Source of the DNA: Basidiobolus meristosporus CBS 931.73
Lineage: Eukaryota > Fungi > Basidiobolomycota
Length of the DNA: 64,000 nucleotides
Direction of reading: 5' to 3'
Assembly: GCA_002104905.1 (NCBI GenBank)
Contig: MCFE01000483.1
Coordinates: 1 to 64,000 of the forward strand
The notes under the pieces were generated by a model. It was not told the DNA's origin. It made no database searches and saw only the letters and a program-made list of their open reading frames with translations. A program made the translations under genes and the position numbers. Each line of letters opens with the position of its first letter. The first letter of the stretch is position 1. Of this stretch, positions 29,493 through 41,165 are shown one piece after another.

Positions 29493-31131
29493 TTTTTTTC
29501 TTCCAACTTCGACGTGCGTGCTTTGTTCAAAGAGAGTTGAGCACAAAGGGTAAAACAAACAATTTCACCAAAGCGAGGGAAGGCCTTTTAGCTTTCTCTG
29601 CTCCTATGGAACCTTCACTCCTGGTGTTTGATGTGATGGACAGCCTCCAAATCTTCAGAAATACTTGTTGTCGAAGTGGCAAAGGCAGTAAAGTATCAGA
29701 ATCCGTCTGGGATGTGAGATGATTGAAAGGGCGTACTGGTGACTTGCTCCAATGAGGCCATTTAAATATGAGGCTGTGATCAAATATGCACATGTGACTT
29801 GGGAAATATCATGAACACGGAGTTCCTAATTTGGAAAGGATTCATATAATCCTTCAAAAGATTTAGAAAAGTTCTCAAACCAATGGCTATCTCATGGTCA
29901 TTCCAAGTATCATTCATCACTCGGCATCCGATTCGTCATCTGCAGCAATTCAGTAGTTCGTATTGCAAATGAGAAGATATGTAGATGATATAAGGATAAT
30001 ACAATGATGCCATCTGTCTGGAAATTAAGCAGAGCTATCCACGAATGAATCTGTCTGAATCTCTGGACCTTGCTGGGTTCAACCACTGCCAATGTTGGAG
30101 CATCGACAAAGACTCGTAAGCGCACCCCGTGAGTAGCATCCATTCTTGCAGTCTCAGACAAAGCTGGGAATGCGTGAGCCGGTTGGTAAAACCGGGTAAC
30201 CATTACGTAGCTGTTTACCAACGGCCAAATGGTGCTGCACATACACGGGCCTGGTAGTATTTCCACGCCAGGCGCAACCCAAGCGTCAAATACCCTATTC
30301 TCTATACAGCATGGTTTCAATCATTGTCCTCCGGCACGAGGCCAACTGCTGTCCAGATTGTGGAAAGTAGGGGCTGACCCAATCTGGTTATGCTATTTTG
30401 TTATGAACAGGTGTGATGTTTCCACAACCTGTTTCCTTTCCCCTTGAAGTTACGAAACCACCATTCCTGGAGTTTGTATACGATACATCACCTTGGCTGT
30501 TCCCTACGCCCTAGCGACTCCGGATCAATGAGCATGGCATTAAATCAACGGTCGCTTTCTTTGTTGATCAATCTGGCTGTAGCATGCCTGAATACACGAG
30601 TCGGCACATGGAATCAACGGCCAAGTGATGCCATCAGGTGTGAGGCTGTTACCCAAACCAAGTTAGCATGCAGAATTCTATTGTTCATTGAGAGTCCAGG
30701 AGGGTTGAACCGGTATCTGTACAGCAATCGATCAGGCCACTCCTATTCACAGATCATGACTGTTGAAAACATCAATGAAGCAAAATGATCCATCAACATG
30801 CCATTTGAGGCAGATCTGATTTGCTGATCCCCAAGAAGCCAGGTGATTTTTCAGTTCATTGCAGTCCGCATCAGCCAGACCCATGCCGATGACTCACCAT
30901 GCTACAATCCCACTCCGTTCTCAGTGGACTTGTGGGCATACATGTGTGCCATGGCACATACAGTATGTGAATTAGATACAATCTCCATCACACCCATATA
31001 TGTCAATCGACATGTTCTTAATGGTAGTTTATTTGATAGTTCCAGGAATGAGAGCCAGCGCCCTCTGGCTCATAAAAAGCAAAGTCGACAGGGAGACGTA
31101 CTCATATATAGCAAGATGAGCAATGGTAGAA

Positions 31132-31860
31132 TTAACGGTTGCCTAGACAATGGTTTGGTCAGTACAATGCGAATCACCCGGTTCACTCTTCGCCACTTAC
31201 TCTTTGCGACACGCTCCAACTCGTCCTTCTTCTTGATGGCGTAGCTGTTGGAGGAGCCCTTGGCAGCATTGATGAGCTCATCAGCTAAGCACTCGGCGAT
31301 GGTCTTGACATTTCTGAACGCTGATTCACGGGTTCCGGTGGTCAACAAATGAATAGATTGATTAACCCTTCTCAAGGGAGAGACATCGACGGCTTGTCTA
31401 CGGACGGTACCGGAGCTACCGATACGAGTAGAGTCTTCACGAGGTCCAGAGTTGATAATGGCATCGATAAGAACTTGAACGGGGTTTTGGTCGGTAAGAA
31501 GGTTGATGATCTCAAAGGCGTGTTTGACGATGCGAACAGCCATAAGCTTCTTGCCGTTGTTGCGGCCGTGCATCATGAGCGAATTGGTCAAACGTTCAAC
31601 AATTGGGCACTTGAATGATTCGAATGGTTAGATAAAAATGGCGGCGACTATCTGTATTGCTCCAATATCATTATACATACCTGAGCCTTTCTGAATTTCT
31701 TGGTGGCATATCTGCCAGCAGTGTGTGGCAAATACACAGGAGATCTAACCTGAACGTAGTCGGTCAGAGAAATATCCTTGATTTCAAGATCTTCATAAGT
31801 CCATTTGTTAAAAAGGAGAACGCTTTGTGAAGCTGTGGTGATTTCAGCAGGGAGGGCCAT
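31132..31860 (-). CDS. RPS5: 40S ribosomal protein S5 (uS7), 199 aa; exons 31681-31860, 31201-31609, 31132-31142
   Basis: Near-invariant eukaryotic uS7 sequence ([69 protein letters not shown]). Introns 31610-31680 (GTATGT..AAG) and 31143-31200 (GTAAGT..TAG). Exons total 600 nt. Confidence 0.97.
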
Positions 31861-32985
31861 ATTCCGTTTCACCTGTTAACAAGAGATAGTAATATTCAGC
31901 ATCAATGATACGTCTTGTGGATGGATGCATGCAATGCGAGATGGATTTCATGGCAGAAAATGGCAACATGAAACTAAAAATTGCGTACGCTTCAAAAACC
32001 GCACTAACCGTTGTATTGGATGACCGTTGGAAAAGAGGGTTCGCATTCCACGGGGCAGTGAATTTTGTTCATTTCTCGATCAATTCAGAACCAATGAAGT
32101 CTGATTGAATAGAATTGATTCAATAGGCGACAAAAGCGCAACCATCCATTAATTTGAAGTTCCTAATTATCCACGACTCATGCTGCCAAAAATGTGCGAT
32201 CGATATTTACAATATTTTATGGTTAAATCTTTGTCATTAGCAGGTACTGAGATTGAGATGCCTAATCCTTGGGTAGTCTATCAACCATGATTTCCGGATT
32301 CCATCGAGCGATACGCTATTGCACCTAGACATCCTGTGCACTGAATACAACAAAGCCTCCCACATCTGAAGATTGAAATCATTTGTTGCCGCAGTAGATC
32401 CCTCCAATTCAAATCCTCGAAACTCTATTCAATTAAATACTATGCAGGAAGGATGTACGATATCTGTAGTATCATGTAGTTCGGTTCATTTCAAGGTACA
32501 ATACAGTTCGATAAGCACATACTAAGTATACTTGCACTCGAGGGGAATTAGCTGCGCATTAGATGTTTTCTGAAGTTGGGTTTGGTTTTGCGGTGATACC
32601 TGCGAGTGGATCTGCAATACTGAAGAGATAGCCTTCACCATTGTGACCGTATAAACTTTGTTGATCCTCGTTGCATTCTTTCAGGGGGTCGGATGCACTA
32701 TGTTGTTTCAAGGAGTTAGGCAAAGGGAACTTCTACTTTATTGTCCATGTATGTATACCTGACTAAGTTCAACGTCTCATACACAGGGTGAGATCCAAAA
32801 GTACTATGGAATTGTGATACATCAGAAAATGGGTCCGATGTGAGGTCAGTTGCCTAGAATTTCATTATTAGTTGAGGAGTTTGATTGAAAAAACAATGGC
32901 TTCCTACCGTGATGGCGGAGTCGCACAGAGGCGTACTGCCATAGTCTGTGTAACTTGCAGCTTGTGATCTAGTTGTAAAACGCTA

Positions 32986-34245
32986 TTACCAAATCATCAG
33001 AGTCAGCTTGTCGTATACTCCTTCAGGAATACAGGCAGAGCTTACTTGGTAGGCAGTGTCATATATGGAGTAGGATGCTGATGTAGAACCATCGATGTCG
33101 CACAAATAACCATCAGAACCATCGAATGGTGGGATATCAGAATATAGCAAATACATATCATCCTCATCTATAATTGGCAATGTTTGAAGTTGATCAGTTG
33201 AGACAAAGACTTGAGCAGTATCTTCAAAATATGATAGTTCCCCGCCTGACTCCAACGGATCAGTAATCAGGTCGAAAAATGGAGAATACAGAGATCCAAG
33301 CTGCGTGCTGTATGGGTCACTAGAGCATGGACCTTCAATAAGTGGTCCTGTCTCGACGGTTGTTGGTGATATGGTTGCTTTGTGAATACTTGTGCTTGCA
33401 TGTGTGGTTTCCGCTTCGCCATGGCGATAAAAATGACTTCCGGATGTCTGTGCATAGCCACTGTGAGGCTGGACATGATACAAATTACACTCTATCAATG
33501 TATCTAGGTTCGCATGCTCAAATGTGTTTATACACCTTGCGTTATTGTCCTCTGATTCAGGGTTTTGGCACGTCACACTTTTAGAACGTACAATTGATTT
33601 ACTCTTATAGTTTGATCTACAGGATAGTAAACCAGGTTTCGAAACCCTGAATCTTGAGACTCCTGGTTGAGTATGCAATGGTCGACTTCTGCGTGATTTG
33701 TAGGAATTTTCTCTTCTAAAATCTTTCACACTGCTCCCGATAACAAGGTTTCGAGAAAGAATGACTCGGGCTGGTTCAGTAACAGCGATTTTCCGAAACT
33801 GCTTTGGATGTTTCTTTGAAGTTGGCATGTATTGTTTTTTGACTCTTTTAAAAGCATTCCCAAGTGCATGCTTCAATCCGTTGAGACTGTTGGAGCAACT
33901 TTTGTTTTCACCTATTGATGGGTGTAAGTGTTGAGGTGGATACTTGCTCGGAATGCCTGGGCTAAGTCTCTGTGACCGAACACCAACCGATGAAGCAGAC
34001 GAGAGAGTACTGTTCTTCCCCGATTTCCCTTCATCATTGCGGTGTTGGATCCTATTCCGGGAACACCGCTTTACAGTATGTTTTCGTGGAGGTTTCGAGC
34101 TATTGTGATAGAAGGGCAGGGGTACTCTTGGATTAGGGATTATAAAGCTGCTTCTTCTGCTGTTGGTTTTAAAAGGAGAGGTAATTGGCTCGATTTTGCC
34201 AGTGGAAGCTTTCCGATCAGCACTTTTGATGGGGATATGTTCCAT
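32986..34245 (-). CDS. Hypothetical protein (419 aa) with a basic Ser/Arg/Lys-rich N-terminal part and an acidic Asp/Tyr-rich tail
   Basis: 1260-nt ATG-initiated open frame. No recognisable domain. Confidence 0.55.
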   Translation of the reverse strand: MEHIPIKSADRKASTGKIEPITSPFKTNSRRSSFIIPNPRVPLPFYHNSSKPPRKHTVKRCSRNRIQHRNDEGKSGKNSTLSSASSVGVRSQRLSPGIPSKYPPQHLHPSIGENKSCSNSLNGLKHALGNAFKRVKKQYMPTSKKHPKQFRKIAVTEPARVILSRNLVIGSSVKDFRRENSYKSRRSRPLHTQPGVSRFRVSKPGLLSCRSNYKSKSIVRSKSVTCQNPESEDNNARCINTFEHANLDTLIECNLYHVQPHSGYAQTSGSHFYRHGEAETTHASTSIHKATISPTTVETGPLIEGPCSSDPYSTQLGSLYSPFFDLITDPLESGGELSYFEDTAQVFVSTDQLQTLPIIDEDDMYLLYSDIPPFDGSDGYLCDIDGSTSASYSIYDTAYQVSSACIPEGVYDKLTLMIW

Positions 34246-34734
34246 ATATGCTGAGGAAGGAGTGTGGATATTCGCCGTCGAGTTTTCAACTTTGCTTGGG
34301 GGTTATAATACTAGTAGTAAAAGATGGAGGCTTTCAAACCCAAGTGTCAGGCTAGGACTGGGTATAAGCAAGGTCAACATCCAAAAATGTGGTAAGGACG
34401 GTCCAACCAATTTCGGACACTGTCCCGGCTCGTGGAATCACAGCTTTTGGATGATATGCCACGATGGGTGATATATACTTTCCACCAATTTCATTGGATA
34501 GATTCCGAATATTGCTCAGCATGCAGATGCTGCGGTTAGCCCGCCATCTAGGATAACAGACCGGATGCAATTAAAGAGATCATGATCAAATAATATCAAC
34601 GGCTAAGGATCTTGTTTCAATGCTCAGCAAGAGGTTTATTGTTTGAATGCTTGGGCTATACTAAAGAAATAGGCTGGAATATGTATACATAAGGTGGAAG
34701 ACTTTTTGGTGATCAATCATTGAATAGTACAAGT

Positions 34735-37700
34735 TTAGGCAGAGGCAGGGATTTGACCTCCATAGATTTCCTCCAAATCCAATTTAGGGTCTCCGATCAA
34801 CTTGAGACCGAACTTATCGGAGAGGATTTTGACGGCACTTGGTCTCAAGAAAGCAGGCAATTGGGGTCCAACACGGATATTTTGCAATCCAAGGGAAAGT
34901 AGCGAAAGAAGAACGACAACGGCCTTCTGCTCGAACCATGAAAGTACAATGGATAATGGAAGATCATGAACAGTGCAATTCAACGCCTCCGCTAAAGCTG
35001 AGGCAATTTGAATAGCCGCGTAGGAATCGTTACATTGTCCCATGTCAAGCAATCTAGGAATGCCGGAATCGCCAATGGTCTTCCACTGCAAGGAGTTGAT
35101 TCTGAATTTACCACAACCGGCAGTAAGGACCACTGCGGATTCTGGAAGCATCTTAGCCAGGTCGGTGTAGTAACTACGTTCGCCTTCGTAACCATCACAG
35201 CCACCGATGACAAAGACCCTGCTGATGTCCCCAGTTTCGATGGCCTTCAAAACGGTTGGAGCAACACCGATAACAGTTTCAGAACTGAAGCCAACTTGAT
35301 AGTTGTCAGTAACAGGGGTGAAGCTGCTAGGAGGATACTTGAATTCTGGAGTATCTTCGGTGAAGCCGGGTGATTCCAGAGCAACCTTAATGACTGCACT
35401 GAAATCAAGATCATCTCCAATATGAGCGATGTTTGGCCAGCCCACCACACCAACAGTGAATAGGCGACCCTGGTAGTCATCCTTGGGTGCAGTCAAGCAA
35501 TTGGTGGTCATCACGATAGCCCCAGGGAAGTGAGGGAATTCAATAGATTGTCTCTGCCAAGCGACTCCGTAATGTCCTGCCAAATGCTTGTATTTACGAA
35601 GCTTAGGATATCCGTGAGCAGGCAGCATCTCACCGTGAGTGTAAACGTTGATGCCCATGCCCTCGGTTTGTCTAAGCAAAGCGTCCAGGAATTTGAAATC
35701 GTGTCCAGAAACCAAAACGCATTTGCCAGGACGTGGCTTGAGAGAAACAGTGTGAGGCGACTGAGCGCCAAAGGTGTTGTTTGCATTGTGCAATACATCC
35801 ATACAGATAAGATTTACTTGGCCAAGCTCCATCAAATATCCCAACACTTTCTCCATGTCTTTCGAATCCTTGGTGGTTAAGAAATGGAAGGCACGGTGGA
35901 CATATTCGTAGATGCGACGATCCTCATGGGCAAGAACTAAAGCGTGATCTGCATATGCACAGAGGCCCTTGAGTCCATATACGATCATTTCTTGCAATCC
36001 CACGAGTGCATCGTTCTTGGTAGCTCTCATACGGCTAAGAATACCAACTTCTTTGCCCTTGGAAACCAACATATCCTCGATATCTCCAACTGACCCGGGG
36101 GTGCTGTCGAGAATATCCGAGACACTTTCTGGAATTGGGCATTTCTTGGAGCGCGTTCCGACTCTCTTGCAAAGAGATTGGTATTGAACGCTTAAACGTT
36201 TGGTAAAGTTTCTGCATTCTTGGTGGAATTCAAGGAATCGGCTGTTGTCGAAGTTGACGTTGGTTAGAGTAGAGAAGGTTGCCTTCAAAGTGTAATGATT
36301 CACTTCCGGGTATTCAACTTCGGACTCCTGGATTTGATTAGGATGCTCTTGATGCAACTGACGAAGGTTATAGGCAAACCAAGAGAGACGCTTGAGACAT
36401 GTAATAAGAAGATCCTGCAGGGCAGCAACTTCAGGGGTTTTACCACAAACACCAATAGTAGTGCACCCGCGGCCTTGGTAAGTTTGCTCGCATTGGTAGC
36501 AGAACATCTTGGCATCTTCATACAAGGTAGCAGTAGGGACTCCTTCGCCATCAGCATGCCCGCCTCTCTTGAGAATAATGCTCTTGAGTGCATTTTCTTC
36601 GTCTACACTCTTGGCGTAGGCTTCGACTTGCCAACGGTTCTCCTTCTTCAAGTTGGCAATGATCTCCAGAGATTCCTCATAGGAGATCTGCTTATTAGCC
36701 TGGAGGCACTCGCCGACAGTGATCTCCATAGCACCAGGAATGAGCCCACCAAGTCCGCAATACAAATAAGTACCATTATTGTCCAAGTAGTCGGCTACCT
36801 TCTCAGGGAAGTCCAACATTCTGACGGCACAGTTTTTCTGGTGATCACGAGAGGCAGCATCGATTACCTCTACGAGCCCCTTGCGAGTGAAATGGTCCAA
36901 TTCGTCTTGGAACAAGAACTCATGCTCGTAATATCTCATACCATAGTAAAGTCTGATACGAGACAGCTCGTGACCTTGTTCGAGTAATACTTCGCGATGT
37001 TGAAGAATAGAACGGAATACACCGATACCACTACCCAAAGCCACACCTAAAATTGGGGTGTCAAGGCGCTCGGGGAGCTGCACCAATCCAGAATGAATCT
37101 TCATGTGAACGTAAGGATCAGCGCAGTTGGGAGATTTGTTGGATAGGTAAGTTGACGCTAAACCCTGGAATTTCCCGCCATCTTCAGTCTTCCACTCTTC
37201 GACGAAAAATACAATATCAATCTTGTCTTTAGCGACAAGCGGAGAAGATGCAATAGAGTAGTATCTGCTGGTCAGTTTAGGAACGTTGCTGATGAATTGC
37301 TCCAGAGATATCTTAACGGATGGATAGCGCTCAAGAACATCCACAATGCTGAACACAGTGGAGTTGGACAACTTCATATACATGTTCCCTGCCAACATAT
37401 CGGATGCCAAGCTCTCGAGGGCTTCTTGTTCATGAGCATCGGTAGCAAGGCAGCTAAATCCTTCGATGAGTGCACGGCTAGGAATAGAGCTGATATCCAA
37501 GTAATTTTTCAAGAGTTGACGAACGGTGGCCAATGAAGGAAGTGAAACCGAGTCATCAGTTGGCTGGATTTCAACAACAGTATCAAGATCAGCATTCAAA
37601 AGCCTGGCCGCTCTAGCAACCAACTCGTCCGGATTTTCGGGGACAACTTGGATGTGGCCCGCAACATCGTACTCCAATGATGTCTGGCTAATATCGAAGG

Positions 37701-38328
37701 TTATCAGAGAACCAGTTCTCTCATAATCGGGTGCAGTAAGTCGCTTGTTGCTGGAGACAGGAACTCTAGTGTACCCCTCGTGAGTAACCTCAGGTGCAGC
37801 CCTGTCAGACTTTTGAATCTTGACCGACACAGGCAGAGTCATTTTCACATCTGATCCGGTTAATTTAGTCCATAGAGCCTTTAGCCAAGGACGGAAGGCT
37901 GTTTCATGGCCGTTTCCATCATACTCATCACCCAAACCTACAGGCAAAATGTTGAACCCGCCGAGCTGGCTCATACGCTCATCCAAACTTTTGGCTGCTT
38001 TGTTGAAGTTCTCTTGCAAAGTGCGGTTTCCAAAGCCAAACACAGCGTATCTGGTCTTGCGGAAGAGGTCGGGGGAGTGGTCTTGACGCTTTAGATACGT
38101 CCAGAGTGGAACTGCCGAGTCGGGGAACTCACCATTGTAGAAAGTACAAGTGAGAAAGACTATGAGGGGCTCGCTGGGAAGTGTGGCATGGTCAATCTCG
38201 TCCATGCGGCACAATTTTACGTCAAAGCTACGGATTCTAGCGAAGGTCTGCACCACTTTAGCATAGCCCTCAGTGGTACCAGTCTGAGTACCGTACAAAA
38301 TCAGCATCCGTGGCTTTTCTGTCGACAT
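34735..38328 (-). CDS. hcp: Diflavin (FMN-FAD-NAD(P)H) reductase fused to hybrid-cluster protein (HCP/prismane), about 1197 aa, intronless
   Basis: Reductase part (36616-38328): ILYGTQTGTTE, TCTFYNGEFP, YAVFGFGN, RYYSIASSP, GLASTYL, GSGIGVFRS, LYYGMR, ASRD, YCG, RWQVEAY. A 36-aa linker follows. HCP part (34735-36507): MFCYQCEQ-x6-CTTIGVCGK, TLTNVNFD, YGLKGLCAYADHA, SGHD, YTHGEMLPAHGYP, MTTNC, GGCDG, AGCGK, GQCNDSY, LSWFEQKA. Start set at ATG 38328 because the ATG at 38397 lies only 3 nt from a TATA box. Confidence 0.95.
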   Translation of the reverse strand: MSTEKPRMLILYGTQTGTTEGYAKVVQTFARIRSFDVKLCRMDEIDHATLPSEPLIVFLTCTFYNGEFPDSAVPLWTYLKRQDHSPDLFRKTRYAVFGFGNRTLQENFNKAAKSLDERMSQLGGFNILPVGLGDEYDGNGHETAFRPWLKALWTKLTGSDVKMTLPVSVKIQKSDRAAPEVTHEGYTRVPVSSNKRLTAPDYERTGSLITFDISQTSLEYDVAGHIQVVPENPDELVARAARLLNADLDTVVEIQPTDDSVSLPSLATVRQLLKNYLDISSIPSRALIEGFSCLATDAHEQEALESLASDMLAGNMYMKLSNSTVFSIVDVLERYPSVKISLEQFISNVPKLTSRYYSIASSPLVAKDKIDIVFFVEEWKTEDGGKFQGLASTYLSNKSPNCADPYVHMKIHSGLVQLPERLDTPILGVALGSGIGVFRSILQHREVLLEQGHELSRIRLYYGMRYYEHEFLFQDELDHFTRKGLVEVIDAASRDHQKNCAVRMLDFPEKVADYLDNNGTYLYCGLGGLIPGAMEITVGECLQANKQISYEESLEIIANLKKENRWQVEAYAKSVDEENALKSIILKRGGHADGEGVPTATLYEDAKMFCYQCEQTYQGRGCTTIGVCGKTPEVAALQDLLITCLKRLSWFAYNLRQLHQEHPNQIQESEVEYPEVNHYTLKATFSTLTNVNFDNSRFLEFHQECRNFTKRLSVQYQSLCKRVGTRSKKCPIPESVSDILDSTPGSVGDIEDMLVSKGKEVGILSRMRATKNDALVGLQEMIVYGLKGLCAYADHALVLAHEDRRIYEYVHRAFHFLTTKDSKDMEKVLGYLMELGQVNLICMDVLHNANNTFGAQSPHTVSLKPRPGKCVLVSGHDFKFLDALLRQTEGMGINVYTHGEMLPAHGYPKLRKYKHLAGHYGVAWQRQSIEFPHFPGAIVMTTNCLTAPKDDYQGRLFTVGVVGWPNIAHIGDDLDFSAVIKVALESPGFTEDTPEFKYPPSSFTPVTDNYQVGFSSETVIGVAPTVLKAIETGDISRVFVIGGCDGYEGERSYYTDLAKMLPESAVVLTAGCGKFRINSLQWKTIGDSGIPRLLDMGQCNDSYAAIQIASALAEALNCTVHDLPLSIVLSWFEQKAVVVLLSLLSLGLQNIRVGPQLPAFLRPSAVKILSDKFGLKLIGDPKLDLEEIYGGQIPASA

Positions 38329-38400
38329 ATTGGGACTTGCTTCAGAAATGCAATATAGTTGTAAGCCTGATTTATTATTTGGATGCATGGAGCTCATGGT

Positions 38401-38407
38401 ATTTATA
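38401..38407 (-). promoter_or_regulatory. Putative TATA box of the reductase-HCP fusion gene
   Basis: TATAAAT on the minus strand, 73-79 nt upstream of ATG 38328. The spacing is similar to that of the other TATA-bearing genes in the window. Confidence 0.5.
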
Positions 38408-39534: not shown

Positions 39535-41165
39535 CTAGTGGATCAGTCCAAGTCTGACGCTGTTTGGAACTTGACGGTCGTTATCCTTCGCCTCACTCTT
39601 AGTAGTTGTGGGCCCTACTTTACATTCCGTGGTTTCATCCCGAGCCGTTTTCAAAAATGGGATCAGGTCAGTTCCACCGGTTCCTCGAACCACATCCTCC
39701 TTATTAACTGTCCTAGCGATGCCATGAGTGTTTGACGGCTTGTTAAGGTTGGTAGAAATGGTGGTCTTTGGAGCATCCGCAGCCCCGCCGACGTTCAATG
39801 GAGTGGTCATGCCCGACTGCCCTTTCTTCGCTGGGATTACAATATACCGAGTAACCATTTGGATATGGGCGTTTCTGAATAGTTTCAACTGTTCTAAACA
39901 ACCATCAAACGCCTCTAAAAGCTCCTCCTGCTCGAAATCATCAATTTCGTGAGGGTTTCCCACTCCGTTGACGGACATATCTTGCACATATTGGCGAATG
40001 CTAGGGGCGTTCTCCAGCGCTTCCAGGAAACGGCGATGCTTACCAGGCATATACTGCCGCATCTCTGCAAAGAAGCTAACTGGCCTGTTTTTCTTCAAGG
40101 GGGTGTTCTCGGCATCCCCAGGCTTGGAGTCCCCGGTGGCGGTATGCTGAACACCCAAAGCAACATCCAGACTGTGTATCAAAGCGCTCTGACCAGCGCT
40201 TCCGCCGGCGTATTTGCGATAGCGGGAATACAGCTCCTCTTGATCGGCATAGGGCTTTACATCATCCACTCCTTGGTAGAGGATTCCGTGTGGTAGACCA
40301 GCTTCGGCCATATTTTTCCAACCGGCCAAGTAAGTCCGGATTTTCCAATAGAAGAGATATGGATCACATTTATCATACATCTGAACCAGGATTCGCTCAA
40401 GCTTCTGAATGGTTTCAGATAATTTCTGTAGCCAATACACAACTTTTCCTGGGGAATTATCGACGACCGCCTTCATAGCGTTAACAACTGCGGTGAGTGC
40501 GCGACCACCTTGAGCCTCAATAGCTGCGGTAATTAAGTAAAACCAAGCTTCGTCATGAGAACCGGTAAACGTGTGCATCATAGCCAAGTTACTACGTTTT
40601 CAAGTTATAAAACAATCAGTTCTTCCAATTCAATCTCTAGCAGCCCTTGGTATTGATGTTTACCTCAGGTCTAAAGGACCATCTCTATCTAAGAGTCTCC
40701 AGTTCCAGATGACAATGGAGGCATTGCACAATACTGGGCTCATGTCCAGAATGCTAGCCAGTCTCGTGAATGGAACAGCAACACAAGGTGGTAATACTTG
40801 TGATACGGGCTCATTTTTGCCCCAAATAAACCCATGAGTGAACATGGAAAGGATCACGAAGCCTCTCTGCTGCTCAGCCTCAGTTTTCAGATGGCTGATC
40901 TCTAAGATAGGTAACTGAAGTTGATTCGTATTAAAACCACTGGTGTAGGAGAATCACATAGAAACGAATTCTCTCAGGATGGTGTACATACTTGGAGGAT
41001 TTTTTGGCGAAGCTTGCCGGCCAAGAGCAACTCCTTGAGGTCGTCCATAATATATTCCCAAGGCTCGTAGTAAGGATTTAGAAGACGTCGTAGGGGACCA
41101 TTGGGAGGAAGAAATCCAGTTTCGGTAGATATGCCAAAATCTTCTAAGCGAGGGATTCTATTCAT
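39535..41165 (-). CDS. BNA2: Indoleamine 2,3-dioxygenase, 493 aa; exons 40992-41165, 40664-40914, 39535-40591
   Basis: Motifs TGFLP, FTGSHDEAWFYL, GGSAGQS, MRQYMPGKHRRFL, FRNAHIQMVTRYI (proximal heme His) and GTGGT. Two GT-AG introns (40915-40991, 40592-40663). Exons total 1482 nt, in frame. Confidence 0.95.

Follow-up and report, generated by a model that had tools for sequence, protein, structure and literature searches.

The window analysed here is a 64,000-nucleotide stretch of the Basidiobolus meristosporus CBS 931.73 genome. On its minus strand, at 34735-38328, the ORF list and translation place an intact, intronless gene of 1197 aa that joins, in a single frame, an FMN/FAD/NAD(P)H diflavin reductase (residues 7-571) to a hybrid cluster protein (HCP). 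The gene is a member of an old eukaryotic family that is widespread and biochemically unstudied. Our best explanation, which we regard as likely with all its parts taken together, is that this is a genuine, functional nuclear gene of the fungus whose product is a soluble single-chain NAD(P)H:hybrid-cluster-protein oxidoreductase, probably located in the cytosol, and that its family goes back to a single old fusion whose descendants were later spread, or sorted, through transfers between eukaryotes and through loss. The major features of the gene are as follows.

38400..38407, minus strand: TATAAATA box, candidate TATA, 72 nt 5' of the start codon (sequence read)
38395..38397, minus strand: upstream in-frame ATG, probably untranslated, 3 nt past the TATAAATA box; orthologues begin at the second ATG
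34735..38328, minus strand: fusion CDS, 1197 aa plus stop, intronless (ORF and translation); identical to deposited protein P0001; junction spanned by contigs of independent assemblies
37849..38310, minus strand: FMN (flavodoxin-like) domain, residues 7-160 (Pfam Flavodoxin_1 10-148, 97 bits); no signal or anchor N-terminal to the domain
37069..37782, minus strand: connecting and FAD-binding domain, residues 183-420 (Pfam FAD_binding_1 186-394, 168 bits)
36616..37068, minus strand: NAD(P)H-binding domain, residues 421-571 (Pfam NAD_binding_1 429-530, 22.1 bits against a cut-off of 22; alignment with syNOS and rat CPR; family conservation)
36508..36615, minus strand: 36-aa linker, residues 572-607 (translation and motif positions)
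34738..36507, minus strand: hybrid cluster protein, residues 608-1197 (Pfam Prismane 608-1185, 466 bits; NCBIfam hydroxylamine reductase equivalog, 650 bits against a cut-off of 367)
36445..36501, minus strand: N-terminal cluster motif C610-x2-C613-x8-C622-x5-C628, class I spacing; four Cys invariant in 53 fusion proteins
34635..34640, minus strand: AATAAA, candidate polyadenylation signal, ~95 nt past the stop codon (sequence read)

The ORF, Pfam and NCBIfam evidence agrees with a preliminary description of this DNA, in which one ORF runs from a diflavin module through a 36-aa linker to a full-length HCP. Counted from its first ATG, the minus-strand ORF would span 38397..34735, or 1220 codons. 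The gene's own TATA box, also described earlier and read at 38407-38400, lies only 3 nt before that ATG, so the second in-frame ATG, at 38328, is the credible start of the protein. This start yields the 1197 aa of the deposited P0001, and the N-termini of the Basidiobolus orthologues agree with it (MSTEKPRMLILYG / MLSEKPRMLILYG).

The surroundings of the gene are fungal, and include chitin synthase and cyclin genes besides the following.

31070-31872: RPS5/uS7, two exons, not the immediate neighbour of the fusion gene
32986-34245: Ser-rich ORF of 419 aa, between RPS5/uS7 and the fusion gene
39535-40587: IDO, plus one more upstream exon; upstream neighbour of the fusion gene

The gene had been placed between intron-containing RPS5 and IDO genes; this is accurate on the IDO side, while on the RPS5 side the 419-aa ORF intervenes. 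The earlier argument against bacterial contamination is borne out by these neighbours (chitin synthase, two-exon RPS5, IDO and cyclins), by a GC3 of 0.50 for the fusion gene and 0.51 for IDO, and by synteny with the B. ranarum orthologue, where IDO is followed by the fusion gene and RPS5 lies further along. None of the three Basidiobolus genomes shows an intron in the gene. That it is a single gene, a point on which the preliminary description had proposed a check, is confirmed by contigs of four runs that bridge the junction (one from another sample, one from a ~90% identical relative), by the Sphaeroforma gene, whose diflavin-HCP junction falls inside one exon, and by single transcripts carrying both halves in MMETSP and EukProt (Cyanoptyche, Papus and 'Hpha' entries). 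Measured against the B. meristosporus copy, differences at codon positions 1, 2 and 3 number 165, 59 and 648, four-fold degenerate sites are 66% different and the proteins are 86% identical; dN is 0.05-0.13 across every segment, linker included. Every segment is thus under strong purifying selection. That mis-assembly, bacterial contamination or a read-through model produced an artefactual fusion, or that the gene is a decaying pseudogene, is a reading of negligible probability: the number of RNA runs listed for Basidiobolus is zero, but this reading is contradicted by the unbroken 3.6-kb frame, the independent contigs across the junction, the orthologues of three Basidiobolus genomes, including the syntenic one, the single Sphaeroforma exon, the two-half transcripts of other taxa and the selection on every segment.

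The reductase half has the features expected of a diflavin enzyme. The FMN loops [ST]QTGT, ST[YF][GY]NGEFP and FGLGN are kept across 58 fusion proteins. The FAD domain carries R355-x-Y357-S358 and G389-x-x-S392, of which R355, Y357 and G389 are invariant, and the NAD(P)H domain contains A430-L-G-S-G-I-G, S493-R494-D495, C524, E569 and the stacking Y571, the last residue of the RWQVEAY sequence (565-571) that closes the module. In the syNOS and rat CPR alignment, C524 falls on the catalytic Cys, and E569 and Y571 on the pair of acid and stacking aromatic. S493-R494 aligns with S596-R597 of rat CPR, which bind the 2'-phosphate, although the residue after S493 is His rather than Arg in most family members, which makes a preference for NADPH insecure. 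The NAD(P)H motif is atypical in having no Pro, and the NAD_binding_1 match is barely above the Pfam cut-off. ALGSGIGVF (430-438) had been described as a divergent form of GPGTGIAPF; the motif is there, but it does not reflect local decay, as ALG[ST]GIG is a signature conserved across the fusion family. The proposed CPR/CysJ-type assignment leans towards its first part. Among PDB entries the half scores 201 bits against syNOS reductase, 195 against CPR, 174 against BM3 and 98 against CysJ, placing it nearer CPR and NOS reductase, and it reaches 199 bits of the 668 required by the cysJ equivalog. The FAD-shielding aromatic is internal, as stated earlier; the contrast then drawn with NOS on this point fails, since the NOS chain too continues past the aromatic in the syNOS alignment. 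The best stand-alone relatives of this half are 25-33% identical, and no close host-type relative is among them.

The first part of the linker ('DxENxLK') is conserved, with D576 and N579 conserved in at least 90% of members. An AF2 model of the protein (pLDDT 85, pTM 0.73) predicts a helix at 575-588 and a disordered linker middle, with pLDDT below 50 at 586-595. In this model the FAD/NADPH module matches CPR and BM3 with Z 34 (FAD domains, rmsd 2.3-2.9 A), and the HCP half fits solved HCPs at an rmsd of 1.6-1.9 A (Z 46-48). Its FMN domain deviates from closed CPR by an rmsd of 10-11 A and from open CPR-HO-1 complexes by 8.8 A, a displacement compatible with a shuttling domain. The AFDB model of the 86%-identical protein superimposes on the AF2 model with a TM of only 0.52 and rmsd of 21 A, and the predicted inter-domain geometry is unreliable.

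In the HCP half, the class I Cys spacing reported earlier is present, as are all seven hybrid-cluster ligands: H876 (SGHD), E900 (THGE), C944 (TTNC), C1044 (GGCDG), C1072 (AGCGK), C1099 (GQCND) and E1133 (WFEQK), each invariant or at least 90% conserved in 53 fusion proteins. The architecture and every residue-level statement of the preliminary description hold. The best PDB sequence match is E. coli HCP 7de4 (463 bits, 42% identity), although aligning this class II protein to the Cys motif needs gaps of 3 and 1 residues.

A one-polypeptide electron chain from NAD(P)H to HCP, as proposed earlier, is the natural reading of the confirmed architecture. NADPH would hand a hydride to the FAD bound in the C-terminal portion of that module, the reductase, and FAD would deliver single electrons to the FMN of the mobile N-terminal flavodoxin domain. 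This domain would then swing over to the HCP half and reduce its N-terminal [4Fe-4S] cluster, from which electrons would reach the [4Fe-2S-2O] hybrid cluster. There, NO would be reduced to N2O and/or NH2OH to NH4+, presumably in the cytosol. The fused module would do the work that in bacteria falls to separate donors, Hcr or ferredoxin, making the protein probably a self-powered NO or hydroxylamine reductase. If so, an aerobic or facultative eukaryote could run HCP straight off its NADPH pool and so counter nitrosative stress or detoxify hydroxylamine where oxygen is low, as in the herptile gut or decaying litter.

Which substrate HCPs in general use in vivo is still a matter of debate. The enzyme, even as a functional NAD(P)H-driven HCP, might instead protect against peroxide or oxidative stress, take part in protein S-nitrosylation signalling or act as a general NADPH-oxidising electron sink, a set of roles that we consider unlikely. 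Recent structural papers (PMC10210160, PMC10502027) describe HCP function as unclear or debated, most fusion-carrying organisms are aerobes or facultative aerobes, and no nitrogen-oxide genes are found near the gene in the window. Yet the ligands and fold are indistinguishable from those of HCPs with measured NH2OH and NO reductase activity, and the hydroxylamine reductase equivalog is passed widely. According to references quoted in other papers, bacterial HCP reduces NH2OH and NO with Hcr. The HCP of Acanthamoeba is induced by hypoxia and anoxia (PMC13632651).

The taxonomic survey suggested earlier finds the fusion widespread in eukaryotes. Clustering at 90% identity gives about 68 protein clusters of full-length fusions from chytrids, monoblepharids, ichthyosporeans, oomycetes, glaucophytes, Chromera, ochrophyte algae and euglenozoan transcriptomes; prokaryotes yielded no copy of the fusion, nor did any prokaryotic genome show the family-specific diflavin motifs. 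Algal members have an N-terminal extension that is absent in Basidiobolus. Each half finds its closest relatives in further eukaryotic fusion proteins (40-53% identity). The trees of the two halves both recover the fusions as a monophyletic clade (SH-aLRT 99 and 100) within a clade of eukaryotic HCPs and show the same A/B split, which indicates one old fusion event that predates Basidiobolus. The separate trees proposed in the preliminary description are thus concordant, and its claim of a horizontally acquired HCP, taken as a bacterial gene that entered this fungus and was then wired to a reductase, is not sustained. A recent bacterial uptake followed by local fusion to a host CysJ/CPR gene could be imagined, as HCPs are mainly prokaryotic, many bacterial xenologues of Basidiobolus are mentioned in published papers and the gene has no introns in three Basidiobolus genomes. 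It is very improbable, being contradicted by the trees and relatives of both halves (the best bacterial HCPs, at 48-50% identity, match the HCP half only), by the absence of a close host-type relative of the diflavin half, by the neighbour-like GC3 and by the motif search.

Any transfer into Basidiobolus would have involved a ready-made fusion from another eukaryote. Fungal copies, seen only in zoosporic lineages and Basidiobolus, fall in three places: the monoblepharids, Basidiobolus, and the chytrids, whose sister group is the ichthyosporeans, followed by the oomycetes. Constraining the fungi to be monophyletic lowers the likelihood by 277 lnL units (AU p about 1e-38), in a quick LG+G4 tree search with the tested group named after earlier trees had been seen. 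The non-monophyly points to later eukaryote-to-eukaryote transfer or differential loss. Acquisition by transfer rather than vertical fungal descent, which would leave the mechanism unchanged, is possible though not favoured: it fits the scattered positions and the contrast between the intronless Basidiobolus gene and the at least 17 exons of Sphaeroforma and the interrupted gene of Gonapodya, but ancient paralogy with differential loss would produce just such a pattern, at least two divergent copies are present in Gonapodya, and Basidiobolus sits in a polytomy within clade A.

Whether the architecture had been described before was left open in the preliminary description. Public databases already label such proteins "hydroxylamine reductase / hybrid cluster protein", and a footnote in a 2021 review, an algal Fe-S protein survey by Przybyla-Toscano et al. 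(PMC8003979), notes the Cyanophora paradoxa fusion; a biochemical study of any member was not found in the literature searched. The Cyanophora protein (P0004) is 52% identical over 99% of the length and groups with Basidiobolus in clade A. The footnote itself gives no analysis, phylogeny or biochemistry and calls the partner 'sulfite reductase', whereas the module scores nearer CPR and NOS reductases.

Like E. coli Hcp-Hcr, the fusion combines an HCP (fold match Z 46) with a dedicated pyridine-nucleotide-dependent reductase, but the E. coli donor is the separate Hcr and the Basidiobolus donor a fused N-terminal FMN and FAD diflavin reductase. Hcr is an FNR-type polypeptide with FAD and [2Fe-2S]; the title of a paper by van den Berg from 2000 reportedly bears on it. 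The class II spacing of E. coli HCP, Cx2Cx11Cx6C, also differs from the Cx2Cx8Cx5C of Basidiobolus. The class I HCPs of Desulfovibrio and Methanothermococcus (1gn9, 1e2u, 8cnr) share the Cys spacing, the seven ligands and the three-domain fold (Z 46-48, rmsd 1.6-1.9 A across about 537 residues), but are stand-alone proteins from anaerobes, 38-40% identical to the Basidiobolus half. We know of no established physiological electron donor for them. P450 BM3, NOS and the Euglena/Cryptosporidium pyruvate:NADP+ oxidoreductase (PNO) likewise supply a metallo-enzyme from a covalent FMN/FAD/NADPH module, and the C-terminal module of Euglena PNO ranks third among AFDB clusters. Their reductase follows the catalytic domain at the C-terminal side; here, as pointed out earlier in contrast with NOS and P450 BM3, it is N-terminal (7-571, then HCP at 608-1197); the acceptor is an HCP Fe-S cluster rather than haem or TPP/Fe-S, and the NADPH loop reads ALG[ST]GIG rather than GPGTGIAP. 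In CysJ-CysI, a diflavin flavoprotein with the same terminal stacking Tyr supplies a [4Fe-4S] reductase of an inorganic oxyanion, but from a separate subunit, and the fusion falls well short of CysJ in both the equivalog and PDB scores. Other HCPs joined covalently to an electron-donor module include P0330 (HCP, cytochrome b5 and b5-reductase-type FAD/NAD), A0A0V0QJA2 (HCP and a C-terminal FNR-type barrel) and P0101 (rubredoxin, flavin-reductase-like domain and HCP). Since they use other reductase classes, mostly at the C-terminus, they represent independent solutions to the same problem.

The fusion gene lies in a single frame, free of interruptions, that runs from 38397 to 34735 on the reverse strand of the window. 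Translation from the second in-frame ATG, at 38328, yields a protein of 1197 aa that is 100% identical to the deposited protein of this gene (P0001), and the N-terminus so defined agrees with those of its orthologues. Every motif quoted in the preliminary description is present at its place, which confirms that observation in detail, and the TATA box reported there was likewise found. Features of the gene, its surroundings and its protein are as follows.

38407-38400, reverse strand: TATAAATA box, 3 nt upstream of the first ATG and 72 nt upstream of the second
About 95 nt downstream of the stop codon, reverse strand: AATAAA, read from the sequence
32986-34245, reverse strand: Ser-rich ORF of 419 aa without a Pfam match, between RPS5 and the fusion gene
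Residues 10-148: Flavodoxin_1 (Pfam, 97 bits)
Residues 186-394: FAD_binding_1 (Pfam, 168 bits)
Residues 429-530: NAD_binding_1 (Pfam, 22.1 bits, barely at the cut-off of 22)
Residues 565-571: RWQVEAY, end of the diflavin module
Residues 572-607: linker of 36 aa
Residues 608-1185: Prismane (PF03063; 466 bits against a cut-off of 27, profile positions 1-544 of 546)
C610-x2-C613-x8-C622-x5-C628: N-terminal four-Cys motif with the class I spacing Cx2Cx8Cx5C
H876, E900, C944, C1044, C1072, C1099 and E1133: hybrid-cluster ligands, within blocks identical in the alignment to E. coli HCP (7de4)

The neighbours in the window include a chitin synthase, a two-exon RPS5/uS7, IDO (with its first exon further upstream) and cyclins. 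The gene had been placed between RPS5 and IDO; IDO does adjoin it, but RPS5 is not the immediate neighbour, since the 419-aa ORF intervenes. At the place corresponding to this ORF in B. ranarum, a 615-aa PHD-finger gene is called. Third-position GC content is 0.50 in the fusion gene and 0.51 in IDO. The B. ranarum locus is syntenic, with IDO, the fusion gene (88% protein identity and also intronless) and, further on, RPS5. The junction of the two halves is spanned by contigs of three origins: the source sample, a second, nearly identical sample and a relative of about 90% identity. Neighbours, matching GC3, synteny and junction-spanning contigs thus all agree with the earlier argument against bacterial contamination. 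Contamination, a chimeric assembly and a pseudogene were all rejected, and the fusion gene is a chromosomal fungal gene.

Two features of the read-level data concern the interior of the gene. At 37877-37986 the contigs of the source-sample assemblies break, and several short contigs (39-87 nt) of higher or unequal depth overlap, a pattern that suggests a short repeat or an allelic bubble within the region coding for the FMN domain. Nearly identical contigs from a run labelled as another organism (X3), listed as DNA by guess, cover only 34862-38159 without any flank; coverage confined to the interior of the coding sequence would fit a transcriptome. A search for RNA runs with the gene listed none, and one without that restriction gave only runs guessed to be DNA.

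The C-terminal half matches the curated models of the HCP family over their full length and above their cut-offs, scoring 650 bits with the hydroxylamine reductase model NF003658 (cut-off 367) and 621 bits with TIGR01703 (cut-off 361). C610, C613, C622 and C628 are invariant across 53 members of the fusion family, and their spacing falls within that by which class I HCPs are defined (Cx2Cx7-8Cx5C). The seven hybrid-cluster ligand positions are conserved among the fusion proteins; we take them to be the ligands on the basis of published HCP structures. Judged by these motifs and scores, the C-terminal half is a hybrid cluster protein, predicted to carry the Fe-S-O cluster and to have NH2OH/NO reductase activity. 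It differs from the class II Hcp-Hcr type, in which the Cys are spaced Cx2Cx11Cx6C and the partner is of the FNR type with FAD and [2Fe-2S]: alignment with the E. coli HCP requires gaps of 3 and 1 residues, and the partner here is a diflavin module.

The N-terminal half has the domain order of the diflavin family (CPR, NOS reductase, BM3 reductase, CysJ, MSR and NDOR1), with Flavodoxin_1, FAD_binding_1 and NAD_binding_1 in one chain, and matches its fold with Z scores of 32-34. The cofactor motifs of the family are present (the FMN loops; RxYS and GxxS/T for FAD; the S-R pair and catalytic Cys for NADPH; a final acid and stacking aromatic), except in the NADPH loop, which reads ALGSGIG and lacks the Pro of GxGxxP. 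At the end of the module, E569 and Y571 occupy the positions of the Asp and Trp of CPR. Against solved structures the half scores best with cyanobacterial NOS reductase and CPR rather than CysJ (the first two give 195-201 bits, CysJ 98 bits), and it reaches only 199 bits with the cysJ equivalog TIGR01931 (cut-off 668). The label "CPR/CysJ-type" therefore holds on the CPR side and is imprecise on the CysJ side. No N-terminal membrane anchor of the microsomal CPR type is present, as the FMN P-loop begins at residue 12, with no more than MSTEKPR ahead of the first strand.

An AlphaFold2 model built from 53 family members (mean pLDDT 85, pTM 0.73) matches solved class I and class II HCPs in its HCP half with Z scores of 46-48 and an rmsd of 1.6-1.9 Å over about 540 residues. 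The match to the class I structure 1gn9 (Z 47.6, rmsd 1.6 Å) covers 536 of 543 residues, while the class III structure 7e0l aligns over only 411; together with the Cx2Cx8Cx5C motif, this bears out the assignment to class I, with the three-domain HCP fold and without the class III deletion. The FAD/NADPH module fits CPR and BM3 with a Z score of 34 and an rmsd of 2.3-2.9 Å. For the whole reductase the rmsd is 10-11 Å to closed CPR and 8.8 Å to open CPR-haem-oxygenase complexes, and the poor fit to closed CPR reflects an FMN domain modelled away from the FAD domain. The linker is modelled as a helix at 575-588, after which confidence is low at 586-595. Compared with our model, the one in AFDB for the 86%-identical protein arranges the domains differently (TM 0.52, rmsd 21 Å).

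That protein, from B. meristosporus, is encoded by a gene with other neighbours (HSF, EMC4), and this gene and the one in the window may be a paralogue pair. Their DNA is 75.7% identical, with 165, 59 and 648 differences at the first, second and third codon positions. Since synonymous sites are saturated, NG86 dS could not be computed, and these counts were used together with four-fold degenerate sites, 66% of which differ, close to saturation; at the protein level 86% identity is nevertheless retained. For every domain, and for the linker as well, dN amounts to 0.05-0.13. In 53-58 fusion proteins the four N-terminal Cys, the seven hybrid-cluster ligands, the FMN loops, R355-x-Y357-S358, G389, G432/G434, S493/D495, C524 and E569 are invariant or nearly so, and position 571 is aromatic throughout or nearly throughout. 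The NADPH loop had been described as diverged. It does depart from the usual motif, but comparison of 58 sequences makes it a family signature, A-L-G-[ST]-G-I-G, in which six of the seven positions are kept in 50-58 of 58 and the last Gly in 39. S493-R494 of Basidiobolus aligns with the Ser-Arg pair of rat CPR that binds the 2'-phosphate, while most relatives have Ser-His; from this alignment, NADPH is the likely, though not certain, nucleotide donor of the Basidiobolus protein.

Collinear fusions covering 98-100% of the query form about 68 clusters at 90% identity, and clustering at 50% identity leaves about 7 representatives of the family among 1.84 billion proteins. Two other Basidiobolus genomes carry it at 86-88% identity, and more than 60 proteins from other genera are 38-56% identical along 98-100% of the query, apart from one truncated entry that covers 85%. 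The named carriers are all eukaryotes: the chytrids Polychytrium, Podochytrium and Siphonaria; the monoblepharids Gonapodya and Hyaloraphidium; the ichthyosporeans Sphaeroforma and Creolimax; the oomycetes Aphanomyces, Achlya and Thraustotheca; the glaucophytes Cyanophora and Cyanoptyche; and Chromera, Chrysophaeum and algae of the MMETSP transcriptomes. Further transcriptome entries come from Papus and from 'Hpha' in EukProt, which we take to be Hemistasia (the species is a guess). No relative of the reductase half was confirmed in 185,579 prokaryotic species genomes by a scan that used the clade-A alignment and rested on two motifs, and the ESM Atlas returned only generic diflavin reductases with scores beneath the meaningful range. 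The Sphaeroforma gene extends over about 10 kb and has at least 17 exons, with the linker and the Cys motif covered by a single exon; the Gonapodya gene also has introns. A metagenomic contig (locus L004:616-12807; JGI metagenome 3300056827, contig Ga0558118_18604) carries at least three complete head-to-tail fusion genes, each intronless, 3723 nt long and encoding 1240 aa (P0032), with spacers of about 510 nt; this array is reminiscent of dinoflagellate gene organisation.

The possibility that the fusion would prove widespread and already characterised had been raised in the preliminary description. The first part is borne out. As to the second, public databases name the diflavin fusion "hydroxylamine reductase / hybrid cluster protein", and a full-text literature search returned no functional characterisation of it and a single mention, in passing, in a footnote on Cyanophora (Przybyla-Toscano et al. 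2021, PMC8003979). The gene in the window is therefore one member of an annotated and footnoted family, not a unique fungal invention.

To trace its origin, separate trees were built for the two halves, as had been proposed, and they agree on one fusion clade. The tree of 153 HCP domains groups all fusion proteins in a single clade (SH-aLRT 99), along with a few short entries mostly from contigs of about 2 kb. In the tree for the reductase halves, which also includes CPR-like, BM3-like and CysJ-like stand-alone proteins, the fusion halves are monophyletic (SH-aLRT 100). Both trees separate clade A (fungi, ichthyosporeans, oomycetes and glaucophytes) from clade B (Chromera, algae and euglenozoan transcriptomes). 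Monophyly and the shared A/B split indicate that the fusion arose once and that its halves have been inherited together. The HCP was earlier read as horizontally acquired. On the origin this reading is mistaken, as the fusion is neither a recent bacterial acquisition nor specific to this fungus: in the HCP tree the fusion clade is nested in a broader clade that also contains stand-alone HCPs from green algae and Paratrimastix, apart from the nearest bacterial HCPs (of the Planctomycetota and Verrucomicrobia type, 48-50% identical), and recent bacterial transfer is rejected.

Within the full-length tree the fungal sequences occur in three places, and the oomycetes are sister to ichthyosporeans plus chytrids. 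Forced fungal monophyly was rejected (delta lnL 277, AU p 1e-38) in a quick LG+G4 tree, for a group picked after the earlier trees. This scattered placement requires either transfer between eukaryotes or old paralogy with loss. The reductase half is without a close stand-alone relative, its best matches being 25-33% identical: a word-based search found only proteins of 25-28% identity, and an exhaustive search found proteins of 30-33% identity from Kipferlia, a Muranothrix fusion and metagenomes. No donor could be named from either search. The Muranothrix protein (P0399, 1560 aa, from the M. gubernata transcriptome) is among the closest non-HCP relatives at 33% identity; it joins a glycerol-3-phosphate-dehydrogenase-like module (DAO, BFD [2Fe-2S], Pyr_redox_2 and DUF1667) to a C-terminal diflavin reductase.

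In diflavin reductases such as CPR, NOS, BM3 and CysJ, electrons pass from NADPH to FAD, then to FMN and on to the acceptor. In the bacterial Hcp-Hcr pair, a dedicated NADH oxidoreductase supplies HCP with electrons. By analogy, the fused protein should oxidise NAD(P)H at its reductase and pass electrons through FAD and FMN to the HCP half, which would reduce NO and/or hydroxylamine. The earlier interpretation is right as to the one-chain architecture and the likely chemistry. An NADPH module in place of ferredoxin or Hcr would, we infer, suit organisms that lack a pool of low-potential ferredoxin.

The Basidiobolus, chytrid, ichthyosporean and oomycete proteins start 5-12 residues before the FMN loop, and such short N-termini make a cytosolic location likely. 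Many clade-B proteins and that of Gonapodya have basic, Ser/Thr/Arg-rich N-terminal extensions of 20-95 aa (noted in the related proteins P0025, P0027, P0032, P0036, P0040, P0048, P0066 and P0069), which are absent from the Basidiobolus, Polychytrium, ichthyosporean, oomycete and Hyaloraphidium proteins. By composition these extensions look like mitochondrial presequences, in agreement with the HCP of Acanthamoeba, which is reported to be mitochondrial and induced by hypoxia (PMC13632651).

The carriers are aerobic or facultative (fungi, fish- and crayfish-pathogenic oomycetes, relatives of animals, glaucophytes and marine algae), suggesting that HCP chemistry extends beyond anaerobes and that it may contribute to NO tolerance or N2O release in eukaryotes. 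It is possible, although we consider it rather doubtful, that the family is the first HCP to be self-sufficient by nature: an NO reductase of high affinity, driven by NADPH, in oxygen-respiring eukaryotes, cytosolic in fungi, ichthyosporeans and oomycetes or mitochondrial in the algal members with presequence-like extensions. In that case eukaryotes would have an unrecognised pathway that detoxifies NO and forms N2O, beside P450nor and flavodiiron proteins, and the family would be a tractable single-chain model for electron delivery to class I HCPs and for their true substrate. The physiological substrate of HCP and the electron donor of class I are still debated after thirty years. The fusion is a good experimental target for these questions: a natural fusion with its own NAD(P)H-to-FMN supply has its donor fixed genetically and allows kinetics, spectroscopy and cryo-EM to be done on a single protein.

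Other HCP architectures were also encountered: HCP with cytochrome b5 and a b5-reductase-type FAD/NAD module (P0330, 902 aa); HCP with a C-terminal FNR-type barrel (AFDB A0A0V0QJA2, 968 aa); rubredoxin, a flavin-reductase-like domain and HCP (P0101, 715 aa); and flavodoxin with HCP, without an FAD/NAD module (P0069, 756 aa). HCP seems to have been joined to electron donors repeatedly and independently. Like the Basidiobolus fusion, the Hcp-Hcr system pairs HCP with a dedicated pyridine-nucleotide reductase, but as two proteins and with a reductase of a different class. A top AFDB match is the module of Euglena pyruvate:NADP+ oxidoreductase (PNO). This enzyme, P450 BM3 and NOS are covalent diflavin fusions too; in the Basidiobolus protein, however, the reductase is N-terminal and its NADPH loop is altered.
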